A stretch of 64,000 nucleotides of DNA from the NCBI GenBank assembly GCA_964247055.1, contig OZ176053.1, positions 6,138,001-6,202,000 of the forward strand, read 5' to 3'. Shown piece by piece: positions 15,465 to 60,753 of the stretch. A program made the position numbers and the translations under genes. Within the stretch, counting starts at the first letter, position 1; each line of letters begins with the position of its first letter. The notes beneath the pieces are model-generated. The model was given only the letters and a program-made list of their open reading frames with translations. It was not told the origin of the DNA and made no database searches. Source of the stretch: Paragordius varius (Eukaryota; Animalia; Nematomorpha).

Positions 15465-16287
15465 ATTTAAATGAATGAAAATAACAGAACTCATTAGTTT
15501 AATATTCTTCACTACATAACGGAATTTTTCGATTGATTATTAATAATAAATTATACCTCATTTGTTACCCAATAATACAAATAAATTATAGTTGTTTTCG
15601 TAAAAATAGATGTGTAAATTAATTATTTATCGGTGCTTCAAACAGCACTAAAACCGGTTAACGCGCCGATCTAAATAAATCATTCCACCAAAGAGAACGC
15701 GGTTTGGAATACGGGGCTTTTATGTATTTTAGCATCTAATTATAGAAAATGAATAATGTTTGAGTAAAATTAGACTCACCCATGTACATGGGTTTTACAA
15801 TCAAAATTTAATTATTTCATCAGTTTTGGTTACATAATAATATATCATCAATAAAATTTTCTAACCAAAAAATTCGGTCGATTATCTTTGTGAGTTATAT
15901 GACTCTATATAAATGTGATTAGATAACAAAAAATCGATTAGGGGTGTGCAAAATAGGAAATGATTAATAAGCAACATTATTTTATAATATAAATAAATAC
16001 ATTACTAGTCTCATGTGATAAATATTTTATGTATAATAAAACTTTAAATGAGGTAATGTACATAAACAAAAAAGTTCTAAAAGAGAAATATTATTATATA
16101 ACAATCAATATTAATCCGGAATAATCTAGTATATTGTATAAAAAATTTCCGCTTTCGCAAAAGTAGTCTGATTTATTTTTTATATCGCTGTTTATATGGT
16201 ATCTGTTTTTTGAAGGACTAAATCTAATATCTTTATATAAAAAAATAAATTTGGCAAATGAATCACAAGCTTGACAAATGGTCCTCA

Positions 16288-17268
16288 ATGAACGGAGATT
16301 CCGAATATTATTCCAATAGCAATGAATATCAAACGAACGTATATAATTATCTTATTCAATTGGTTAAACCAAAAGTCAAAATATACGATAACATTTTGGA
16401 TATCGGGAGTGGAGATGGAAAATCAACTTATAATTTTTATCGAACGTTAGTGGATGAAAAGCAGTTCCAAGGCTCTATTGTTGGCCTAGATGCTTTGGAG
16501 AGTATGACACAATATGCTAAAAATATGTATTGCAATACACCTAAAAATTTAGAAAATAACAACAATTCAATGTCTACGGATGAAATACAATCTTCACCAC
16601 AATTAGTATTCGTTAATGCCGATATAGGGTGCACAGATTTTGAAAAATCTATTTCGAGGCGTTTATCCAGTGAGGACCTTCCAATTGTGTTTGATCACAT
16701 TATTTCATGTTGTTGTATCCATTGGGTGGGTGATCAAAACACTTGTTTTCAAAACATCAAACGCCTGCTTAAGCCTTCTCCCTCTATGACTGAAAATAAT
16801 GGCGCCAAAAAAGAAGCTACATTAGACTTTATGCATGGACTTTGCGTGATGCCCGCCCTTAATTATGCCACTCAAAAAATTATTGATGAATGGGAAAATC
16901 CTGATCACATTGATCGATTAAAGAATTTGTACAATGCCAATTTACTTCCTTGGCACAGGGCTTGGATGTTAAAACAGGATCCTATCGCAGCTTACCGACA
17001 ATTCATGGTGAATGCCGGATTTGATGACGAAAAAATTGTTATACAAGAGCTCCCAAATCATCTGTTACATTACAATTTTGGTTCCATGGATAAATTAAAA
17101 AGTTTTGTAAGGGGGTGTTTCCCTGATGTCTTTCCACCCGGTATGTCGGAAGAAGACAAAAGCGCATTTTTTAAAACATTCGCTGATTATATGGGCGAAA
17201 AGAATAAGGAAATAGATGGATGTCCTTTTACAATGTATATCCCTATAATGCATATTCATTATAGCTAA
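16288..17268 (+). CDS. Intronless class I SAM-dependent methyltransferase, JHAMT-like (paralog 1)
   Basis: Single 336-aa ORF from 16258; the in-frame ATG at 16288 (MNGDSEYYSNSNEYQ) aligns with the starts of the two paralogs. Contains motif I LDIGSGDG, GLD, ADI and FDHIISCCCIHWV. Confidence 0.88.
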   Translation: MNGDSEYYSNSNEYQTNVYNYLIQLVKPKVKIYDNILDIGSGDGKSTYNFYRTLVDEKQFQGSIVGLDALESMTQYAKNMYCNTPKNLENNNNSMSTDEIQSSPQLVFVNADIGCTDFEKSISRRLSSEDLPIVFDHIISCCCIHWVGDQNTCFQNIKRLLKPSPSMTENNGAKKEATLDFMHGLCVMPALNYATQKIIDEWENPDHIDRLKNLYNANLLPWHRAWMLKQDPIAAYRQFMVNAGFDDEKIVIQELPNHLLHYNFGSMDKLKSFVRGCFPDVFPPGMSEEDKSAFFKTFADYMGEKNKEIDGCPFTMYIPIMHIHYS

Positions 17269-17997
17269 ACAATATTGTTTGATATTATGGGAAAATAAAT
17301 TTATAATATATATTTTCGGCGTTGATATACTTTACACAATGTTTGTAATACCTATAACACAAGAATAATGGTTAAATTTTTTATATCGATTTTCATACAC
17401 GAACAGATAAATTCTTGAATCTTTTCTAAATTTCCCATATTTTTTTTAAATTAAAGACATAATTGTTCCATATTTGCAATGATTATGTTTATAATACTTT
17501 ATTGGGTTTTGGGAAGGCTATTTAAGTTGGGTACAAATATGAAGATAATAGATACTCGTCATTCTGCTCTTAATTTTTATATTCCGAAGTTTAATTGATT
17601 TTGGTTCCATGTGCGATGTGCAAGTTGGACAATGTTGTATGATTACACTAACATGTATATATATCATCCAATTGTGATTATATTTATGTATCATATCATT
17701 AAAATTTTCCCAAGTACCGCAATGAATATTAAAAGATGGATGTTTTACACAGTTGTTAATTCGTTCATTCTTACCATATCAAAGTTTTCATTGGGGTACA
17801 CAAGGGTTCAATATTGATTACTTTAACATCGGTCAGACCTGATATAAGCTCAATAAAAACTTTTAGAGCTTGTAAAGTTTCACATTGCCTATCACTTATG
17901 CATTAGTGATTAGAGAAAAAAGAAAAATAAGGCTTCCTTAGTTACAAGAATGAGAAAGTTTAGTTGGATAACATTAGTTAAATGCTGACAATTTTAT

Positions 17998-18000
<3 letters not shown>

Positions 18001-18036
<36 letters not shown>
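18001..18036. repeat. (TA)n microsatellite
   Basis: Pure TA dinucleotide run. Confidence 0.95.
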
Positions 18037-18041
<5 letters not shown>

Positions 18042-19699
18042 GACACAAATGTATATTTGGCTTTGAAGGCATTTTCCGCATAACTAGTAAGCCCTTTCAA
18101 AGTAAAATATATATTTTTCTTCCTAATCGCCTTTAAAGTCATGCCGCCATAATCTAGGGCCCTGAAGCCCTACCTCGTATAAAAATAGGGAAACAAGTCC
18201 AAAAAAATTATGTCTTTTAGCAATTTTCCGAATGGCATTATTTTTACTGCTTTATATATAAATTTTGTAAAAACACGGAATAAAAATCTAGCTTTCCCTT
18301 ATTACACTCTTTTTTTGGACAACCTTAAAGGTTAAACAGCTGTAATGGTATCAAGGTGTATCAAGAAAAGGGTGTAGCAGACCCACGTCGCCACTGTCCA
18401 CAAAAGACGTCCCTTGCTGCCCTTCCATACACCAGTCAATGGTGGTTCAGTGACAGCCGTCTAATTGCGTCGGGGGTCGGGTTGACTTCTAGGGATATAA
18501 TGATAAGTTTATATAAAGATATGTATGAAATAAAATGAAGATATATTTGGCATTTACAGGTAAAATAAATCCAATCGACTATATCCTATATATTCATACT
18601 AATGTTTAATAGATTTAATATTCTTTAAAATATAACGTATGGATATTCTAGCTTAATTCAACCGAAGCATATTTATTATACTGTAACAGTATTTATATCT
18701 TGTTTAATACGATTTTATAAACCAATATTTAACTTTGCTAGTGGTATGTATTTCCGTTTTTAATCCATGTTTTTTTTATAGTCTATAAATTCCAGTTGGT
18801 ATTCATAAAGTGTCTGATATTTAAATCAATTTTTCTCCTTTTATATGTAAATCTAACATTTATAGACCAATAAATTGGTATCAATATTTTATTTATGAAT
18901 GCGCAGATAACTATCAAACATCCATTGAATTTACTTCTAACCGAATACAATTTATGGTATCAAAAATTAAACGATAATAGTTGAGGTAACATGTTGAGAT
19001 TTAGCAATTATAGTTGATAGATGTTTCAAACAACTCATAGTTCCAAATTATTAAATTTATATTTCTATTAAATTTTCTTATTTATTTTATGTTAGTTTTT
19101 GTAACTGTTGATATGGATTTAAAAAAATCAGAAAATTTATTCAAAACTTTATTGTATGAATGATCAATTTTTAAATTTATTTAACCAAAATAATGTAAAA
19201 TACATTGTGATAATTATGAGAAAATAGATTATGCTCTTGATGGGGTTTCGATACATTTTTTCCAGAACGGATATCATTAAGATACTTTTTACTCGCTATT
19301 CACCTGATTATGCGACATATGATTTTATGTATAATATTTTATGTATTATTCACACTTCATAAATATCAATTCGCTTTAATTTTAGAGAGTTTGTTAGCAT
19401 AAAAATTATTTCTATATTTAACCAAAATTCACAAATATTGACATATATTTTTTAATGTAATCACGAAATATATTTTTATTCGTAATGTAAATTTAACATA
19501 GAAAGCCATTCATTCTTTATATTACATATATGGAGGTTCGTTTAATAAACATAGTTTATAATTAAAAAATACACTGTGAATTTTTAAATTGGTTATCAAT
19601 TAATTATATACTCACCCCACTGATTGAAATAATCTAAACCGCATTACACAAATGGAATTTATTTAAGAATTGTATTAATTTCACATTGTTTGGAATGTC

Positions 19700-19915
19700 C
19701 ATTTACCAAACTACTCCGGCCATATAATAATCTTTTTATATGTTAAAGGTAATCTCTACACTTAAAAGAGGCCAAAGAAAGCTTCATGGATGGATAATAT
19801 TCTAAAAGAAACCAATAAACTTTAACAGAAATCTATACCAAAACTAAAACTCGCACTTTATGGAGAAGTTTTATCTAAAAATTGCAAAAATCCGACATCG
19901 GCTGCAACACTCCAT
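19700..19915 (+). mobile_element. Degenerate 3' fragment of an RTE-clade LINE
   Basis: Broken frames give YSGHII, KRGQRK, WMDNILKET and KTRTLWR, resembling the RTE ORF C-terminus pattern (YFGHI..R, RGRP..W.D.I, DR..WR). Confidence 0.55.
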
Positions 19916-20092
19916 CCTGATTTTAATTGAGTTCGGTACACATCTCTAATTAATTGCATTGTATTTTATTGAATGAGAAGAAATGAAAAATTATTTAGGA
20001 ATATTATTGAACATAAATTGGGCGATTGTGATGACAACTTTTTGAATGTTTATTTTATTAATTCTTAGCATAAACAACAAATAATCAATGTC

Positions 20093-21073
20093 CTAATAGG
20101 TTATCCCATTTGTTACGGTTTGCTGCGCTGTATTGTTGTAATGAAATAGGGGTATGTAAGGATGTTCGCCTTTTTTAGCAGTTTCGGCTAGCGATTCCAT
20201 AGTATATTGAGCGAATTCTGTAAAAAAGGTTTTAGACAGCTCATTCGTTGGGTCCATTAATTCATAGGGCAAAACTTTCGGGAAACTTACTTTCAGGAAT
20301 AAGGCCAATTCTTCTATCCTTTTCCATGGATAATTTATATCTGCAGCTTGTACTGATATACCGTGATAATTAAAGCCAGCTTTAACCATTAATAGTTTAT
20401 AATATTCTGTCGGGTTGGGTTCATGCATCCATTCTCTCCGCCATGGGAGTTTATTTTGCTCATGTTTCTCTTTTAACTTCTCTGTATAAGGATTCCACTT
20501 TGGATCACGCAAAATTTTTTGACAAGCATCATCGGCAGCATTTGTTTCAATGTAAAATAAAAGATTTACACTGTTTATGTGTTGAGTGGTAGTATTTGTA
20601 TTTATATTTAAGAGGTTGTATAAATTTGATAGCGCCATGTGTTGATCATTTATCCAATGCATACAAAATGCTGAAACGATATGATCAACTTTTGGATTAT
20701 TTGAATGTAGTGCAACCTTTAATTTATCCTTTATTTCTTGGAGTGGTTTACTAATATCACATACGAGAAAGTTTAAACTAGGTCCACTGTTATCATAACT
20801 TACGTCATTGTGTTTATCATGCGTGGCAAATTTTTTTATGGCATATGCTATCATAGTTGGTTCAATATCCATGCCAATTATCATACCTTTAAAATTGAGT
20901 TTTTCAACAAGTGTTGCGTAAAGTGAATACGTACACCTACCATCACCACATCCAACATCCAGGATTATATCTAATGGACCAACATAATTTACAACGTTTG
21001 GTATGATAGTGTTTTTGTATATTTCAAATTGGAATTGATTAAATTTAGCGTAATCTTCGGCGTTGGCATTCAT
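20093..21073 (-). CDS. Intronless class I SAM-dependent methyltransferase, JHAMT-like (paralog 2)
   Basis: 326-aa single ORF with MNANAEDYAKFNQFQ, LDVGCGDG, GMD, CDI, DHIVSAFCMHWI and LPWRREWM; collinear with the other two paralogs. Confidence 0.9.
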   Translation of the reverse strand: MNANAEDYAKFNQFQFEIYKNTIIPNVVNYVGPLDIILDVGCGDGRCTYSLYATLVEKLNFKGMIIGMDIEPTMIAYAIKKFATHDKHNDVSYDNSGPSLNFLVCDISKPLQEIKDKLKVALHSNNPKVDHIVSAFCMHWINDQHMALSNLYNLLNINTNTTTQHINSVNLLFYIETNAADDACQKILRDPKWNPYTEKLKEKHEQNKLPWRREWMHEPNPTEYYKLLMVKAGFNYHGISVQAADINYPWKRIEELALFLKVSFPKVLPYELMDPTNELSKTFFTEFAQYTMESLAETAKKGEHPYIPLFHYNNTAQQTVTNGITY

Positions 21074-21899
21074 TTTTTATCATATAATAATTTTTAGCTA
21101 ACAATCCAGTTAATACAGAATGATAAAATAAAATAGGTTAAATATTGTAAACAGATTCTTGCTTTATGTATTTTATTTAGCCGTAAACCTGCCTCTAATT
21201 TGGCAAAAAAAGAGGTAAAAAAATTTTGGCATATAAACTAATTTGATTACTATTATTAATATTATATACGTTAATTTTTAGCTTTTCCTTGAATATTTTT
21301 TAAAAAAATATTAACCAAAGCATAATAATTTTTAAGTTTAGCTTTGGATATTAGTGGATAATTGTCATTTAAGTAGTAATAATAAAGATAAATGCACGGT
21401 GGCAGTCAGAGATGTCATTTTACAACCTAATAACTGGTATTATTCATGGTTTTAATAATGTTGGTAAATAAATAATACAGAAATACCAATTTTTTGACTA
21501 ACGTAAATAGAAGGTATTAATTTTTTTTATTGAGTTACTGTTTATTACTGAATAATAATGAATGCTAAACAATATTTTTTTAATCAATTGAAAATTACCT
21601 TAACCAAGGATTATTTTATTCAACAGGTCCAGACTGTGTTAAAACCGACCTAGTCAATTAAAAAATATTTTTTAATAATGATTAACCAACACGGTATATT
21701 TTGGTTATCATGCATCGTATCGGATAAATATTCCTTATATTTCTAAAGATTCCTAAGACTCTTGATTTTACTAAATTTGAGTGCATTATTACTAAACAGT
21801 TTGACATTTTATAAGTAAAAGATATATTACTTAGCAAAAATTCATTTTAATAACTTACATAAATATATTAACTGAAAACAAATGTTTCAATCCTACAAG

Positions 21900-23100
21900 A
21901 CGACTGGGTCAAATCGTATCACTTACCGTTCTAAAAGGCAATCTCTGTCAGAACTATAGAATAATTGCGGTCACCAACAAACTATAATAACTCCACCTCA
22001 AGATAATACTAAAACGAATTTCATCCACACATTATGAAATTTCTGATGTAAAAGTTGACTTAGATTAAAGCGAAACACTACAAATCATACAGTTACTATT
22101 AATACTATAATTCAGAGATACAACAAAATTGGAAAAAGTTTGTAGTTTTTTGGACTTCAGTATGGCATTCGACAGAGTACACCACGACTGTCTATGGAAG
22201 ATTTTACAATCTTCCGGAGTTTCCTCCCATTTGTTGAACTCGTTGTAAGCAAACAGCTGCCATCAAAGCACAATACGGTCCCACCAAGTGGTTCCCTATC
22301 CTCAGAGTGTGAGACAAGGATGTGTCCTTTCTCCCCTCCTCAACACACGGAAATTTAAATGCGCAAATTTCCTCACCATATTGGAGCGCTAATCGGAGTT
22401 CTTACTATTTGCGATCTCCAGTACCGACAACACGGTTCTATTGACAGAATCACATCGAACATGATTTATCTCTTAAATAGACTTACCGTCAATGCAAGAA
22501 GCTAATCCCATCTAAATCTAAATAATGATCCTCAACGCCCCCAGTTCCTTTATCACTTTATCGACTTAGCTGATCCAAATATTTAGTTTCCTAATTGCAT
22601 ATGACGGCAGTTCAGATCCAGACATCTGAGCACGGCTTGGATTAGGGCGTGCTACCATGGGCTATGATTCGGAACTTTTTGGTAATAATAGTTTCAAGAT
22701 TAGCCATCCTTAAGGCGATGGTTCTCATCGGGATTTACGGATTGAAATCATGGGGGTGTCTACCGACAAGCCCGCATCAACTCAAATGTGTGCTTCCGGA
22801 AAATTTTGGGCATCTCCTGGAAATGTTTCTTAGTCATTAATAGTTAACTTCATCAAACCTGAATTCTTGCTTTACGATCTGATATCTACAAACAATTAAA
22901 ATATTTCGATATTCTACGATCCGATTCCATAATCTCCTTGGGTTGGTCAATGTACCCGCAAAAAAAGCCACATCCAAACGATCAGTTACAAACCTTACCC
23001 TTTCCCAAATAATTTAAAAATTCTTAAGATCTTCTGGCGTGGATAATGCTTATTTATGAGAAAGCTAAGCGTCGCTATTCGACTAGCTTCTAACACACAG
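21900..23100 (+). mobile_element. Decayed RTE-clade non-LTR retrotransposon, reverse-transcriptase region
   Basis: Frameshifted pieces CQNYRIIAV, FLDFSMAFDRVHHDCLWKILQSSGV (from about 22147), SVRQGCVLSPLLN (from about 22306) and SSDPDI*ARLGLGRATM correspond to LINE RT motifs. The boundaries are approximate. Confidence 0.85.
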
Positions 23101-23292
23101 TAATGCCAAACTTATTCAACTTTAAGCGATTTCCTGAGCAATTAATGCATATGCTTCGATAACATATTATTGTAATTTATTTATTAAAAAAATAATTATA
23201 TTAAATGGAATTTTAGAGACAAATAATGAGAAAGACTGTTTGTACACAAAATTATCAAATGTATAACTATCAGTGAAATTTTGTCATACATA

Positions 23293-24312
23293 TTACATTG
23301 ATATCTCATAATGAAATATTGGTAGGTAGGCTTGATCAATATCAATAGCACCATTTTCAGCGTCCATTTTGCTTTTAAAGTCTATCATATACTGTGCAAA
23401 CTCAGTAAAAAATTTATCTGATTTTCCACCAGGTTCGTAGAGATCATCAGATAACGTATTGGAGAGAGATGATTTCATAAGATTTGCTCTTTCATCTAAT
23501 GTTTTAGCTTCTTTAGCAGCAAGGTCCGGTATTTTGCGTACAGAAATGCCTTGTGGTTTAAATCCAGATTGTACCATAATTGCTATGTAAGAGTCTATTG
23601 GATTAGATTGGCACATCCATTCTCTACGCCAAGAAATTTGATAGGAGTTATAACGTCTTCTAAGTATGGCGGTATAAGGGATCCATTCGGGATTGGCTAA
23701 AATCTTTTGACAGGCATAATCAACGATAGGAAGTTTGTCAGGGAACAAAAGATCCATGGTACTTACTTTTTTAGCCTTTGTATTTGAGCAAGGCGTTAGA
23801 ACAGAATCGTTCGATAACAATTTGCACATGTTAACTAAAGCTTGTTCTTGCTTAACTATCCAATGCATGCAAAAGCTGGAAATTATATGGTTAACCCGTT
23901 TACCTTTTAGCATGTGAAGTTTTGCTTCAACTTCTTCAAAATCAGCACTGATATCACATAAGATAAAAACGAGTCTAGGTCCTTTCAATTCTTCCTCCGT
24001 TTCTAATAAATTTACTTCTCCTTTTTGTAATTGCGACGGCTTGTTTAAAGTGTTAGGCTGAGAAGCGAAATGCTTTGTAGCATAATCTATCATAGCTGGA
24101 TCATTGTCCAACCCTATAATCATTCCTTGAAAATTTTTTTCTTCTATTAATTTGGAATACAGAGCATGGGAACATGCGCCTTCCCCGCATCCGACATCCA
24201 AAACTATATCTTGCTTTTCAATGCTTGGAAATACCGTGGGGATAAAGTATTCACGAAAAATATTATGCTGATAAGTGTTATATTTAGCATACTCTTCAGC
24301 GTTGGAATTCAT
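23293..24312 (-). CDS. Intronless class I SAM-dependent methyltransferase, JHAMT-like (paralog 3)
   Basis: 339-aa single ORF with MNSNAEEYAKYNTYQ, LDVGCGEG, GLD, CDI, NHIISSFCMHWI and ISWRREWM. Confidence 0.9.
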   Translation of the reverse strand: MNSNAEEYAKYNTYQHNIFREYFIPTVFPSIEKQDIVLDVGCGEGACSHALYSKLIEEKNFQGMIIGLDNDPAMIDYATKHFASQPNTLNKPSQLQKGEVNLLETEEELKGPRLVFILCDISADFEEVEAKLHMLKGKRVNHIISSFCMHWIVKQEQALVNMCKLLSNDSVLTPCSNTKAKKVSTMDLLFPDKLPIVDYACQKILANPEWIPYTAILRRRYNSYQISWRREWMCQSNPIDSYIAIMVQSGFKPQGISVRKIPDLAAKEAKTLDERANLMKSSLSNTLSDDLYEPGGKSDKFFTEFAQYMIDFKSKMDAENGAIDIDQAYLPIFHYEISM

Positions 24313-24983
24313 AAGATTGATTTAAAATTTAATATAAAAATTTTTATTTAAAAATATTTATCAACTATGGACAACATATAGATTTGGCTCTTTGACACCA
24401 TAATATTTGTGTATATAGTAGATAATCTTTTTGGAAAAAAAATTATTATTTTGTAAAATGTCATCTTTTTAGTTTTTATGGCCAAAAAATAAGCCATATA
24501 AAATAAAAAAAGTGGTAATTGGAACTCTATCTGATGTGTATAATCTCTTATGGTTTATCATTCACTCTTATTGTCGTTGACATTATATAGACAAAAGTGA
24601 TATGAATGCTAAACTAATCCTAAAATAAGTATCAACTGAAGAATAAGTTATTTATGATGAACATTGTTTTTGAATTAATTACCAAGATAAATTTTCCACA
24701 ACTCTCATTCGCTTAACAGTTTGAAAACTTATAGTTTCAAAATTATATAAAAGACTAAATCGGATCTATTAATATAAAAAATCACGCACCATTACTAAAT
24801 TATTAGTAATAACGCGTTTAAAAATTTTATTAAGTGTAAATCTTGCATATAATAATATGTAATATTTGAAAGTATTGCATTTAATGACCAAAAAGAGCAA
24901 TCAATATTAAATTTAAACTGAAATTACTGTGTTATATTTTATACCATGCGCCGGCAATTTTAATACCTTAATGGTAATTAAAA

Positions 24984-26615
24984 TCTATATATTTATAAAA
25001 ATGGAAAATGCTGGCTTTGTGATCTGGTACAGGAAAATCGGTAAACCCATTCAAATCCAAACATCGAAAAAATATAATCATTAATGAATGCCCCGACAAT
25101 AGCTTCGCCCTTTTTTTGAAATAGGCCCCCAGTTCGGGCCCACCCCGTGTGAAAAACGGTTTTTTTTTTGAAAATAGAAGTCCACAAAAATCGTGTCTTT
25201 GAGACAATTTTCCGGAGAACGTGTTGGTCCATTCTATTTCAAATATGATTTTTATTTAGTTATTTTCGATTGCGCCAAACATAGTCGAGTCACTTTTTTG
25301 ATTTAGGCCCTCTTTTTACCCGCTCCCCCCGTAAAATGCCACCTTTTTCAAAAAACAAAGTCCACAAAAATATTTTTTTTAATTCTCTTTTTCGACCAAG
25401 ACATGAGACCATAAAAATTCATTATGGATTCCACGTATTCCCTGTTAAAAGGCAAAAATTTTAGCCAAGCGTTTCTTTGTTGATAGCTGCTGGGTAAGGA
25501 GCTACCCGCGAAAAACTGATTTCTCATGTAACTTTGTAATCTGTTTACCGGAAAACCGGTGAACCCATTCAAATCCAAATATCGAAAAAATATAATCATT
25601 AATGAATGCCCCGACAATAGCTTCGCCCTTTTTTGGAATTAGGTCCCCAGTTCGGGTCCACCCCGTGTGAAAAATGGATTAAGTCAATTTTTTGGAGAAC
25701 GTGTTGGACCATTCAATTTCAAATATGATTTTTGTTTACTTATTTTTGATCGCGATGAACATAGTCGACTCACTTTTTTGATTTAGGCCCTCTTTTTACC
25801 CGCTACCCCCGTAAAATGCCATTTTTTTCAAAAAAAACAAAGTCCACAAAAATAATTTTTTGATTTTATTTTTTTGCCCACGGTATGAGACTGTAAAAAT
25901 TCGAGAAAGATTCTTCGTATTCCCTGTGAAAAGGCAAAAATTTTAGTCAAGCGTTTCTTTGATGATAGCTGCTGAGTAAGGAGTATTTATCATATGTATA
26001 GGATGTTAAAAGATATATGGATATTAATACATTATATTTGGTAATCTATATATTTATAAAAATGGAAAATGCTGGCTTTGTGATCTGGTACAGGAAAATC
26101 GGTAAACCCATTTAAATCCAAACATCGAAAAAATATAATCATTAATGAATGCCCCGACAATAGCTTCGCCCCTTTTTTGAAATAGGTCCCCAGTTCGGGT
26201 CCACCCCGTGTGAAAAATGGGTTAAGTCAATTTTTTGGAGAACGTGTTGGACCATTCAATTTCAAATATGATTTTTGTTTACTTATTTTTGATCACGATG
26301 AACATAGTCGACTCACTTTTTTGATTTAGGCCCTCTTTTTACCCGCTACCCCCGTAAAATGCCATTTTTTTTCAAAAAAAAAACAAAGTCCACAAAAATA
26401 ATTTTTTGATTTTATTTTTCCCCCAAGTAAACAATAAATTAGTATGAATGCACCGTTTTAAGATTCCTATGAGATCATAGCTATTAAATAATTTTTCGAA
26501 ATAATCCACATATGTAGATCATTTTATTGTCCCTTTTTTCAAATAACCCCCCCCCCCCCCTCCAGAAGTCCGAAGGACTTCCTCGGGCTGCGTAGCAGCA
26601 CGAGATTTACGCTAG
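24984..26615 (+). mobile_element. Composite non-autonomous Helitron (copy A)
   Basis: Starts A|TCTATATATTTATAAAAATGG at 24984, with a second identical start at 26045. Ends with hairpins GAAGTCC-GAA-GGACTTC and CTCG(G)GCTGC-GTA-GCAGC(A)CGAG followed by CTAG|T at 26612-26616. There is no TSD, and the core unit occurs three times internally. Confidence 0.85.
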
Positions 26616-39800: not shown

Positions 39801-41454
39801 AATCATACATTTTAAATCTTGATTTTTTAAAATATAAATCATTGTATAAAAATGTAAAGTAGGAAATAGAGAGAGATATGGTAAAAAATAAGGTTTAAAA
39901 AGTATGGTGGGTTTTAAAAAATATGTCTAAATATTTTTATGTTTTGTCCGTAAAATTTTATTTTTTAAAGTTTTAATATTCGGTAAAATGTTCGTAATAC
40001 TTACAAACATAAACTAATAATAGCATAAAAATGGTATATATTTACCTTCACTACAAAATTTCAGGACCTCATCACTGGACGCTTTGTTTTCCTCTGTGGT
40101 GGGTGTAAGACCTAAATCTTTATGGCATTGAACACAGTAATCGTTTAAGGGATTAAATTTTTCCAAACATTCATCGCTACAAAATTGTCGCACGGAACGA
40201 TTTTCAAGCTAAAAATCATTTTAATGTTAAAAATTTGCAACATAACATAGATTTCTGTCATATTTAACTAATCCTTATTTTCAATATAGACATAGTATTT
40301 AAATTCAATTCAAATCTTAATTTAGTCTAATAAAATATCTAGAAAAAGATTCTCGATAATTTATAGTTTGTATTACTATTCCCTTCCTGTTTAAAATAAT
40401 ATACTTTTAAACTAACTTTAAAAATATCTAGAAAAAGATTCTCGATAATTTATAGTTTGTATTACTATTCCCTTCCTGTTTAAAATAATATACTTTTAAA
40501 CTAACTTTATACGTATATGATTAGCAGATAATAAAAATATATTCAAAAACAAAAACCGTAGCAAAACCCTAAATTTAGCGTTTCCATGATTCCAGAAAAT
40601 AAATTAACTGGAACCGGAACTAATATGTGAATTTTGAACCGTTATAATCTTACTATATTTTTAAAATAGACCATGGAAAATAAATTTGGAAAGTGATGTC
40701 TTGCTAATATGGCTTTAAACCAAAATTACACAAGAACACATAAAAACCAACGCAATCTAGGGTATTTTTTAAAATACAAAATCAATTAAAACGAATTTTT
40801 AGATATTGAAATAAAATTTTTAAATTTATATACCCGTAGACAATATTGTCCAAATGATGTGCTTGTTAAAACTTTGTGGCAGTTAAAACAACAAATATCA
40901 AGACGAGGAAGAAATGTGGTTAAGCATTCAGCGCCACAAAGATCGAGATTTATACAATCTTTATTATCAGTTGAGTTATATTTATCCAATCCGATCTTTA
41001 ATCTATTTTCCAAAGTTCTACCACATTCAACACATGTGGGGGTCTCTAAATAAAGAGCCTGACATGGCAAATGAACAGGACAAATTGGTAAAGATATATC
41101 ATCTAAATTATATAATAAAAATTTACTTAATATAAAGATATTTTCATGAGCGGGAAGAATTTTTTGATAACAAAATATGCAACATTTAGGATTTGATAAA
41201 TCCATGTTGTTATGGCTTTGAATAGAATTTATTATGGGTAAAGAATTTGTTTTCATTGCATTTGCGGTATTTTGATGTTCAAAATTACTATTATTTTTAA
41301 GATGTAGGAGATTTGCATCGTTGAAATTATTTACATGATTATGATGTGTATAATGTGTAACAAAATCATTTGTCTTATAAGGATTGTCTGCATCAAAATT
41401 AATTTCTGCAGAATTATGATATCCATTTAATAAGTTGGATTCATCAGAATTCAT
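27812..41454 (-). CDS. MYM-type zinc finger protein (ZMYM2/3/4, woc-like), about 25 exons, roughly 1,700 aa
   Basis: In-phase GT-AG exons run from ATG 41454 to TGA 27812. They encode repeated Cx2C..(F/L/V)C(S/G)xxC fingers (CVECG..LCGAEC, CFNCH..FCSDEC, CVQCH..FCSEDC, CFVCE..VCSTQC, CEYCA..FCGPIC, CHSCN..FCSQKC, CDGCQ..FCSFPC), a Pro-rich PVPFYIPYP..PVPIVVPTFIP segment, LPSDPLQAELLTMADM, and a C-terminal DUF3504-type region ([71 protein letters not shown]). Confidence 0.92.
34010..34257. mobile_element. TA-type MITE copy 2, in a ZMYM intron
   Basis: AACAATTCAAATTCACCCTAAAA ... TTTTAGGGTGAATTTGAATTGTTCAAGGGTAAATTTGAATTGTAAATGGTA; homologous to 2098-2383. Confidence 0.72.
35690..35869. mobile_element. 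Truncated TA-type MITE copy 3, in a ZMYM intron
   Basis: Interior sequence (AAAAATGAAATTT, TAATAATGA.GAGTT.TATT.ACCCGAAAACA) and right end TTGAATTGTAAATGGTA match copy 1. Confidence 0.6.
40332..40509. repeat. Perfect 2 x 89-bp tandem duplication in ZMYM intron 1
   Basis: The unit AAAATATCTAGAAAAAGATTCTCG...AAACTAACTTTA starts at 40332 and again at 40421. Confidence 0.9.
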
Positions 41455-59994: not shown

Positions 59995-60753
59995 ATGGAA
60001 AAGAGCGATGATTTATCATTTCTGTCATATGAAAGATGGGAAATCAAAATTATTACAACTGCAGCTATGATTATGATTATTATATTAGGGTCAATTGGAC
60101 TCCTTTATTTAGCTAAAGTATGCAAAGTTCGACTTCAAACAGTCAAATCAGCGTTTTTCAGTTTATATCGTAAAGTTTTACTTGGTAAGGATTCAGAACA
60201 ACTTCCAATTCATGCAAGTCTTGGTCAAAATGATCTTTTTAGCGGCCTATATAATATGTACCATCATAAAAACAGCCTTAATGAAATGGTTGGTGGTTGG
60301 AGCCGAAATCCAAATGCCAAAAAATGGGTAAAAAATCGGCCATTAGAATCAATCCAAAACACAATGGAAAATAATCATAACAAAATGAATAATAACATTC
60401 TCCAAACTTATTGGGACATTCCTCTCATTGTTAAGCCCGATCAGCCGGGAATACTCCAAGAAACATCTCATTATTTCAATGATGTGATTGAATCTCACGA
60501 ATGCCCCTCAGAGTATTTTGGATATGATTCCCATTATCCTTTATACGTGTACCCAGGCGCTCATGTGACCCCTTTTGAACAAACCTATGCTGTCATACAG
60601 TCAGGCCATCCTCGTTCGAAACTTAATCGTGGAGGACATAGGACGACTGGATGGGATCGCGTTAAAGCTCTGAAAGAACGTTTATTAGAGATGGCTACTA
60701 AAGACACAGAATATGTATTGCCCCAAATTATAATTGGAGATAGTGATATGTAG
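59995..60753 (+). CDS. Single-exon 252-aa protein of unknown function with one N-terminal transmembrane segment
   Basis: A 759-nt stop-free ORF starting with ATG is very unlikely by chance at this AT content. Hydrophobic stretch IITTAAMIMIIILGSIGLLYLA followed by basic KVCKVR. No family motif recognised. Confidence 0.72.
   Translation: MEKSDDLSFLSYERWEIKIITTAAMIMIIILGSIGLLYLAKVCKVRLQTVKSAFFSLYRKVLLGKDSEQLPIHASLGQNDLFSGLYNMYHHKNSLNEMVGGWSRNPNAKKWVKNRPLESIQNTMENNHNKMNNNILQTYWDIPLIVKPDQPGILQETSHYFNDVIESHECPSEYFGYDSHYPLYVYPGAHVTPFEQTYAVIQSGHPRSKLNRGGHRTTGWDRVKALKERLLEMATKDTEYVLPQIIIGDSDM

Follow-up and report, generated by a model that had tools for sequence, protein, structure and literature searches.

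A cluster of three JHAMT-like methyltransferase genes with uninterrupted coding in the hairworm Paragordius varius, and its counterpart in Gordionus

A 64-kb stretch of the genome of the hairworm Paragordius varius (assembly GCA_964247055.1, contig OZ176053.1, positions 6,138,001 to 6,202,000 of the forward strand; hereafter the window, with positions counted from its first letter) carries three related genes, MT1, MT2 and MT3, whose products resemble the juvenile hormone acid O-methyltransferases (JHAMTs) of insects. The locus raises the question of which enzymes these genes encode, where the family came from, and what it might do in a parasite of insects. Our analyses indicate that MT1–3 probably represent a hairworm-specific (Nematomorpha, Gordiida) branch of the JHAMT-like class I S-adenosylmethionine (SAM)-dependent O-methyltransferases, one that is old and has been inherited vertically within hairworms. 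A preliminary description of this DNA had ranked the locus as its top candidate for an undescribed system; what we found instead is genuine and well preserved, but it is a lineage-specific branch within an enzyme family already known and not a new kind of system.

Family, fold and catalytic residues of MT1–3

The JHAMT-like assignment, which had been made in the preliminary description, was borne out by sequence matches, by the predicted fold and by language-model clusters. In searches of the PDB with MT3 and with a three-sequence profile, the top seven matches were all insect JHAMTs (best E = 3.7e-14, with the profile), and the alignment of the profile with JHAMT took in both the N-terminal Y..N..Q helix and the HW segment. 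By language-model similarity, the closest clusters of the ESM Atlas were arthropod JHAMT-like. An AlphaFold2 model of MT1, built on a 33-sequence alignment, reached a mean predicted local distance difference test score (pLDDT) of 91.3 and a predicted template modelling score (pTM) of 0.90, with two loops (about residues 83–103 and 163–177) that were less confident or disordered. Foldseek searches with this model retrieved the locust enzyme 4VPMT2 first (PDB 8ZSA, 4VPMT1/2; E = 9e-12) and silkworm JHAMT next. VIA-align gave Z scores of 23.7 for locust 4VPMT2 (266 residues, root-mean-square deviation 3.0) and 22.7 for silkworm JHAMT, followed by plant SAMT (20.2), mycobacterial fatty-acid O-methyltransferase (FAMT; 19.8) and Tam (2P35; 16.9). 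The Pfam models Methyltransf_31, Methyltransf_25 and Methyltransf_11 matched MT1–3 above their cut-offs, and these describe generic class I SAM methyltransferase domains only.

Comparison with insect JHAMT shows both what is common and what is particular to the hairworm proteins. The two share a class I SAM methyltransferase core with a helical cap (fold Z 20–23 over about 250 residues), the N-terminal Y..N..Q helix with the catalytic Gln, the His-Trp pair after strand 4, and the SAM-binding Asp and Gly residues. However, identity is just 16–18%, and the two disordered loops and a PW(R/H)RxWM motif in the cap are particular to the hairworm side. The locust 4VPMTs, although the top structural match, are only 15% identical to the hairworm protein, and 8ZSA was not among the profile matches at E < 0.01. 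Plant SABATH enzymes (SAMT and loganic acid methyltransferase) and mycobacterial FAMT have an architecture similar to that of MT1 (Z 19–20), but differ from it in identity (9–15%), in length (about 350 residues) and in their cap, with no sequence relationship detected in the PDB searches.

MT1–3 had been described as strongly diverged from one another yet alike in the pattern MNxxxExYxxxNxxQ, a GxGxG motif I and S..C(I/M)HW, and both observations hold: pairwise identity is 31–39%, and M1, N2, E6, Y8, N12, Q15, the GxGxG of motif I and the S..C.HW residues are invariant in all three. The consensus of motif I is LD(I/V)G(S/C)G(D/E)G, and G40, G42 and G44, D68 and D112-I113 (MT1 numbering) are invariant. 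Gln15, the His-Trp pair, motif I, the strand-2 Asp and the Asp-Ile pair are also invariant when four proteins from the hairworm Gordionus are added, and the Gln and His-Trp align with the equivalent JHAMT residues. The preliminary description had placed Gln and Trp on the substrate carboxylate, a wording that probably traces to plant SAMT, which holds the carboxylate with a Gln/Trp clamp. For JHAMT, the Gln is confirmed in this role and the Trp is not. In silkworm JHAMT crystal structures, the Gln/His pair anchors and deprotonates the substrate carboxyl, so that the carboxyl partner is His, and the Trp alongside packs on S-adenosylhomocysteine and the terpenoid chain; silkworm paralogues without the Gln are inactive, and restoring it brings activity back (PMC8526772). 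Because the catalytic and SAM-binding residues are retained in MT1–3 and in the Gordionus proteins, the enzymes are predicted to be active. The N-terminus of the MT1 model is a hydrophilic helix bearing the catalytic Gln, and a signal peptide was not evident in MT1–3, though no direct test for one was made.

Uninterrupted coding, arrangement and selection

The three single-exon open reading frames (ORFs) of about 330 aa (+, −, −) within 8 kb that had first drawn attention to the locus were found as ORFs of 326, 326 and 339 aa (Table 1). They are the three longest ORFs of the window, and the next two, of 252 and 222 aa, have no Pfam match at E <= 0.01. MT3 and MT2 form a tandem on the minus strand, while MT1 converges on MT2. 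For MT1, an in-frame upstream ATG at 16258 adds 10 aa, giving 336 aa from the first ATG. No fourth copy was detected in the window by tblastn with the MT1–3 proteins; the spacers between the three genes hold no noteworthy ORF, and intergenic ORFs are without Pfam match. The G+C content of the MT1–3 ORFs is about 35%, against about 27% for the window.

Alignment showed MT1–3 to be collinear from end to end with the Gordionus and JHAMT-like proteins, with an unbroken frame. Hidden tiny in-frame introns were considered and rejected, as every GT..AG pair with a plausible donor would delete conserved residues. Two extra loops of MT1–3 have no plausible splice sites at their borders. As read from these alignments, the coding of MT1–3 is uninterrupted, in contrast to that of a moth JHAMT, whose gene spans 8.9 kb.

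From a close relative (organism B), DNA contigs were available for most of 19000–24999 and allowed the dN/dS comparison that the preliminary description had called for. MT2 differs from its counterpart by 5 synonymous and 3 non-synonymous codon changes, and MT3 by 3 of each, together with an in-frame 3-nt insertion at codon 99, in the first variable loop. When the two genes are pooled, 8 synonymous stand against 7 non-synonymous nucleotide changes (the latter in 6 codons), at a ratio of non-synonymous to synonymous sites of 4.0. This corresponds to an omega (dN/dS) of about 0.22 and an excess of synonymous changes with binomial p = 0.004, values based on a small sample of 15 changes in parts of MT2 and MT3 only. 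MT2 and MT3 are thus under purifying selection. It is extremely unlikely that MT1–3 are decaying or unexpressed relics without function: no RNA support was obtained and the Gordionus array contains broken copies, but here three ORFs of about 330 codons stand intact in a genome with 27% G+C, all catalytic and SAM residues are invariant at such low overall identity, and the close relative shows a synonymous excess and an indel that stays in frame.

Several other features were observed around the three genes. The spacer between MT1 and MT2 contains an AT-rich palindrome whose two 30-nt arms directly adjoin, are 90% complementary and centre on a (TA)n run. A tandem repeat of roughly three units of about 540 bp, 75–97% identical, begins about 670 bp upstream of the MT3 start codon and could represent a satellite or belong to a repeat element. 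In the contigs of the close relative, two intervals showed a several-fold higher summed depth with many loose ends, and two joints skip short segments, a pattern suggesting that these spacer intervals contain dispersed repeats and that the two worms differ in structure on a small scale.

Table 1 Coordinates of MT1–3, of other features of the window and of related loci. Positions refer to the window unless a locus is named.
Feature	Position	Strand	Size	Description	Key residues (codon positions)
MT1	16288–17268	+	326 aa from family-consensus ATG	Single-block ORF, JHAMT-like SAM methyltransferase	Gln15 (16330–16332); motif I 37–44; Asp68; Asp112-Ile113; His145-Trp146 (His 16720–16722); PWHRAWM 221–227
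MT2	20093–21073	−	326 aa, start 21073	Single-block ORF, paralogue	Gln15 (21029–21031); motif I 38–45; Asp69; Asp106-Ile107; His139-Trp140 (His 20657–20659); PWRREWM 210–216
MT3	23293–24312	−	339 aa, start 24312	Single-block ORF, paralogue, upstream of MT2 on the same strand	Gln15 (24268–24270); motif I 38–45; Asp69; Asp120-Ile121; His150-Trp151 (His 23863–23865); SWRREWM 227–233
Palindrome	17986–18045		60 nt	MT1–MT2 spacer	
Tandem repeat	24982–26403		~540-bp units	Upstream of MT3	
ORF	40786–41454	−	222 aa	Among the next longest ORFs	
ORF	59995–60753	+	252 aa	Among the next longest ORFs	
Intervals of higher depth	19800–19999; 22200–23199			Contigs of close relative	
Skipping joints	22224–22311; 22340–22594			Contigs of close relative	
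Second Gordionus copy	L001 14664–15810			Annotated range	
Gordionus reverse-transcriptase fragment and at least two frame-broken copies	L006 1555–1953; 10007–10748; 19216–20086 (OX940785.2 ~10.51–10.53 Mb)				
Bacterial tandem methyltransferase	L005 2126–4512		532 aa	Bacterial contig	

Gordionus relatives and the origin of the family

An exhaustive search of 1.84 billion representatives returned 38 proteins at E <= 1e-3, of which only one, from Gordionus sp. m RMFG-2023, fell below 1e-30. The other full-length proteins of the hairworm type that were found likewise came from Gordionus only. The remaining matches, leaving aside a bacterial tandem protein (2.7e-11) and a fragment from Gordionus, were at about 1e-6 or worse and comprised mite proteins, insect proteins (several of them under the name JHAMT) and Tam-like proteins of bacteria. 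A word-index protein search with MT3 gave no match, and its profile versions gave only Gordionus and distant, mostly unnamed sequences. One Gordionus member already carries the automatic name 'juvenile hormone acid O-methyltransferase'. The literature that we searched contained no link between hairworms and JHAMT, and the Gordionus genome preprint does not mention the methyltransferase family (10.1101/2023.06.26.546503).

The Gordionus genes form an array on one chromosome (OX940785.2, about 10.48–10.535 Mb), in which uninterrupted copies lie about 5 kb apart over about 55 kb. In one part of it (L001), two full copies lie on the same strand at a distance of about 5 kb, each a single uninterrupted block collinear with MT1, and a third called copy begins before running off the end of the locus. 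In the other part (L006), a further intact copy lies on the opposite strand, and a gene that runs off the locus is represented by its C-terminal end; two broken copies, a short fragment and, between them, a fragment of a reverse transcriptase (RVT_1) are also present. One of at least two frame-broken copies has been annotated as a protein of 113 aa; another appears in the annotation as a spliced 258-aa model over 6 kb and is probably a mis-modelled pseudogene. For the second Gordionus copy, the annotated range exceeds the uninterrupted coding block by 256 bases, a hint of a short 5' exon followed by an intron directly ahead of the MN start; if this exon is real, MT1–3 may also have an unseen 5' exon. 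MT1 and its Gordionus orthologues are only 40% identical, and comparison of the window with the Gordionus locus revealed no shared synteny beyond the methyltransferases. The G+C content of the Gordionus loci (27–28%) is like that of the window, and the published Gordionus assembly has 26.9% (10.1101/2023.06.26.546503).

To place the family, we built a careful maximum-likelihood tree of 50 rows, with support given as ultrafast bootstrap / Shimodaira–Hasegawa-like approximate likelihood ratio test (SH-aLRT). Rows with very long branches or odd composition (P0036 and P0067–P0070) and rows shorter than 190 or longer than 350 aa were left out, and a tandem firefly protein entered as split halves. 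The hairworm proteins formed one clade (100/99), in which MT1 grouped with Gordionus (100/99, and 95/95 in a small careful tree that included the fourth Gordionus copy) and MT2 with MT3 (100/95). MT1 is the orthologue of the Gordionus array copies, and MT2 and MT3 belong to an older sister lineage. This topology implies that the duplication separating MT1 from MT2/MT3 predates the split of the two worms. Within the limited sampling, the hairworm clade is a separate sister clade outside the sampled insect JHAMT-like clade, which excludes it with support of 98/95; MT1–3 were accordingly rejected as bona fide JHAMT orthologues. The hairworm clade, the insect clade and one long-branched Legionella sequence grouped together (95/70), while mites and Tam-like bacteria sat elsewhere. 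Quick trees and the small careful tree agreed with the main tree.

These results bear on the origin that had been proposed for the cluster. Local amplification followed by diversification is supported by the divergence of MT1–3 and by the tree. The retrocopy or horizontal acquisition suggested in the preliminary description, on the other hand, finds no support as a recent event and is not needed: Gordionus has the same uninterrupted, clustered family, the split between the two lineages predates that of the two worms, and the hairworm clade does not fall within any of the sampled insect, mite or bacterial groups, as it would after a horizontal transfer. The counter-case that the preliminary description itself had named, an ordinary vertically inherited intronless family in related animals, is in part what the Gordionus array represents.

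Several points weigh against an old, vertically inherited JHAMT-like family of active enzymes. The tree rows are best matches and are biased towards MT3, and they come without orthopteran or mantodean hosts, nematodes or other ecdysozoans; 'JHAMT' genes claimed from non-arthropods (PMC9181382) are likewise absent from the sampling. The hairworm stem is long (0.7–1.4). The tree is most simply read as vertical descent from an ecdysozoan ancestor, which it does not demonstrate, since a sister position to insects is predicted by vertical descent and by transfer from an early arthropod alike, so that an ancient transfer would also fit. Searches by shape in the ESM Atlas gave bacterial class I methyltransferase and arthropod JHAMT-like clusters at similar template modelling (TM) scores, and the affinity to arthropods therefore rests on sequence and not on fold. 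Three RNA runs presumed to be from the same species gave zero contigs over 19000–24999, and no RNA run with the locus was found. Finally, locust 4VPMT methylates a phenol, which means that the substrate cannot be deduced from the fold and the His.

An acquisition by the ancestral hairworm from its arthropod host, with the enzymes now making methyl farnesoate or juvenile hormone (JH)-like esters that act on the host, appears improbable. Hairworms develop inside arthropods, the insect JHAMT-like clade is the nearest non-hairworm group in the tree, the catalytic Gln, His and Trp are kept, and the hairworm coding is uninterrupted while three sampled arthropod relatives, from a moth, a fly and a mite, have gene spans exceeding their coding length and hence introns. 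The insect clade nevertheless shuts out the hairworm proteins, the best arthropod matches reach only E ~1e-6 at 17–25% identity, and two lineages were already present before the two hairworm genera split. Vertical descent in Ecdysozoa would yield the same sister position, and the tree in which it was seen is without sequences of the host orders Orthoptera and Mantodea.

Descent from a bacterial Tam/BioC-like carboxyl methyltransferase, which would explain the lack of introns, is still less credible. Such enzymes match the same superfamily region as MT1–3 and their chemistry is carboxyl O-methylation, several library matches are named Tam, and bacterial models match the fold equally well. The best NCBIfam model for MT1–3 is BioC (TIGR02072, E = 3.6e-11), but the scores of 33–43 bits are far under its curated cut-off of 185, as are the 16–23 bits for Tam (NF002463) under the cut-off of 297, and membership of MT1–3 in either family was rejected. 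The top of the PDB profile search is occupied by the seven JHAMTs, with no Tam or BioC entry at E < 0.01. Tam/BioC proteins also differ in having a W before the N-terminal motif that neither hairworms nor insects have, and they lie apart in the trees. The one Legionella sequence near the hairworm and insect group is on a long branch with weak support (89/26). The best non-hairworm match, and the second-best match in the library, was the bacterial tandem methyltransferase (P0002), the bacterial origin of which is confirmed by its neighbours kup, jag and mnmE. It was rejected as a donor, as its halves grouped with bacteria and away from hairworms in a quick tree. The protein, of 532 aa, begins with a hydrophobic N-terminus followed by two tandem Tam/JHAMT-like domains; the next gene encodes a third methyltransferase, and all of these adjoin kup and mnmE.

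An ancient retrocopy of an intron-bearing ecdysozoan JHAMT-like gene, followed by tandem duplication, is compatible with vertical inheritance of the family and is a possible founder event, if a somewhat doubtful one. All intact copies of both genera and both lineages are uninterrupted, so the founder was probably intronless, while the sampled arthropod relatives have introns and the genome otherwise seems intron-rich, as suggested by the lack of other long ORFs in the window. However, stepwise intron loss would lead to the same outcome, the Gordionus model with the 256-base excess hints at a 5' intron, and a poly(A) remnant, target-site duplication or parent gene is not to be expected when copies are 31–44% identical.

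Substrates and possible role in the parasite

The likely mode of action can be outlined by analogy with JHAMT. SAM would be bound in the Rossmann core through motif I, the Asp at the end of strand 2 and the adenine-reading Asp-Ile pair, with a small lipophilic substrate held under the alpha-helical cap. Gln15 and the His-Trp of C(I/M)HW would hold an acidic oxygen in position and remove its proton, so that it can receive the methyl group, and this oxygen would most likely belong to a carboxyl group, as in JHAMT. The family itself has probably evolved by tandem birth and death, with local duplication and loss within hairworms. The MT1 lineage, common to both worms, has expanded in Gordionus to at least four intact copies plus decayed ones, and the second lineage has given rise to MT2 and MT3 in Paragordius.

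The paralogues probably differ in substrate, because the half of the protein that contains the cap has diverged more than the core: identity among hairworm proteins is 23–37% in the cap and C-terminal half, against 39–53% in the N-terminus and Rossmann part. In silkworm JHAMT, the hydrophobic pocket for the terpenoid is formed in the cap by residues that include Leu142, Val147, Phe148, Ile167, Val220 and Pro222, and it is the cap that varies most among the hairworm proteins. The two inserted loops seen in the MT1 model occur in all three proteins of the window and in neither the Gordionus proteins nor any other relative aligned, and MT3 has the longest form of both.

That the enzymes are active on a non-carboxylic substrate instead, such as a phenol, another hydroxyl or a thiol, in detoxification, cuticle chemistry or signalling, is an unlikely alternative. 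The locust 4VPMTs, the best structural match, are JHAMT homologues that O-methylate the phenol 4-vinylphenol to the aggregation pheromone 4-vinylanisole (PMC12350148), and thus offer a precedent for the use of a JHAMT-like duplicate in making a new small-molecule signal, from a substrate that is not an acid. Many insect JHAMT-like paralogues have no known substrate (PMC8526772), and the hairworm cap is highly diverged and bears the family-specific motif P/S-W-(R/H)-R-x-W-M. Against this, the Gln that JHAMT needs for carboxyl methylation, and that the inactive silkworm paralogues have lost, is invariant in all hairworm copies, and the next-best structural matches are carboxyl methyltransferases.

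Among carboxylic substrates, farnesoic acid and JH acid would be of particular interest. It is conceivable, at long odds, that at least one hairworm enzyme methylates either of them and that the parasite, living in the insect haemocoel, makes methyl farnesoate or a JH-like ester that alters host development, reproduction or behaviour. The intact Gln, His and Trp, the position of insect enzymes as the nearest relatives and the purifying selection are compatible with such a role; nothing favours terpenoid substrates specifically, and with family resemblance as its one positive support the role is speculative.

The locus is of interest for the chemistry by which hairworms castrate and steer the insects they infect. 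The parasite encodes a selectively maintained, expanding family with the catalytic residues of JHAMT, and its three genes in Paragordius and at least four intact ones in Gordionus are candidates for the synthesis of hormone-like esters. Should they make no such esters, they would still constitute a lineage-specific, intron-free, birth-and-death branch of JHAMT-like enzymes outside the arthropods. In either case, the hairworm branch bears on the age of sesquiterpenoid-type methyltransferases in Ecdysozoa.

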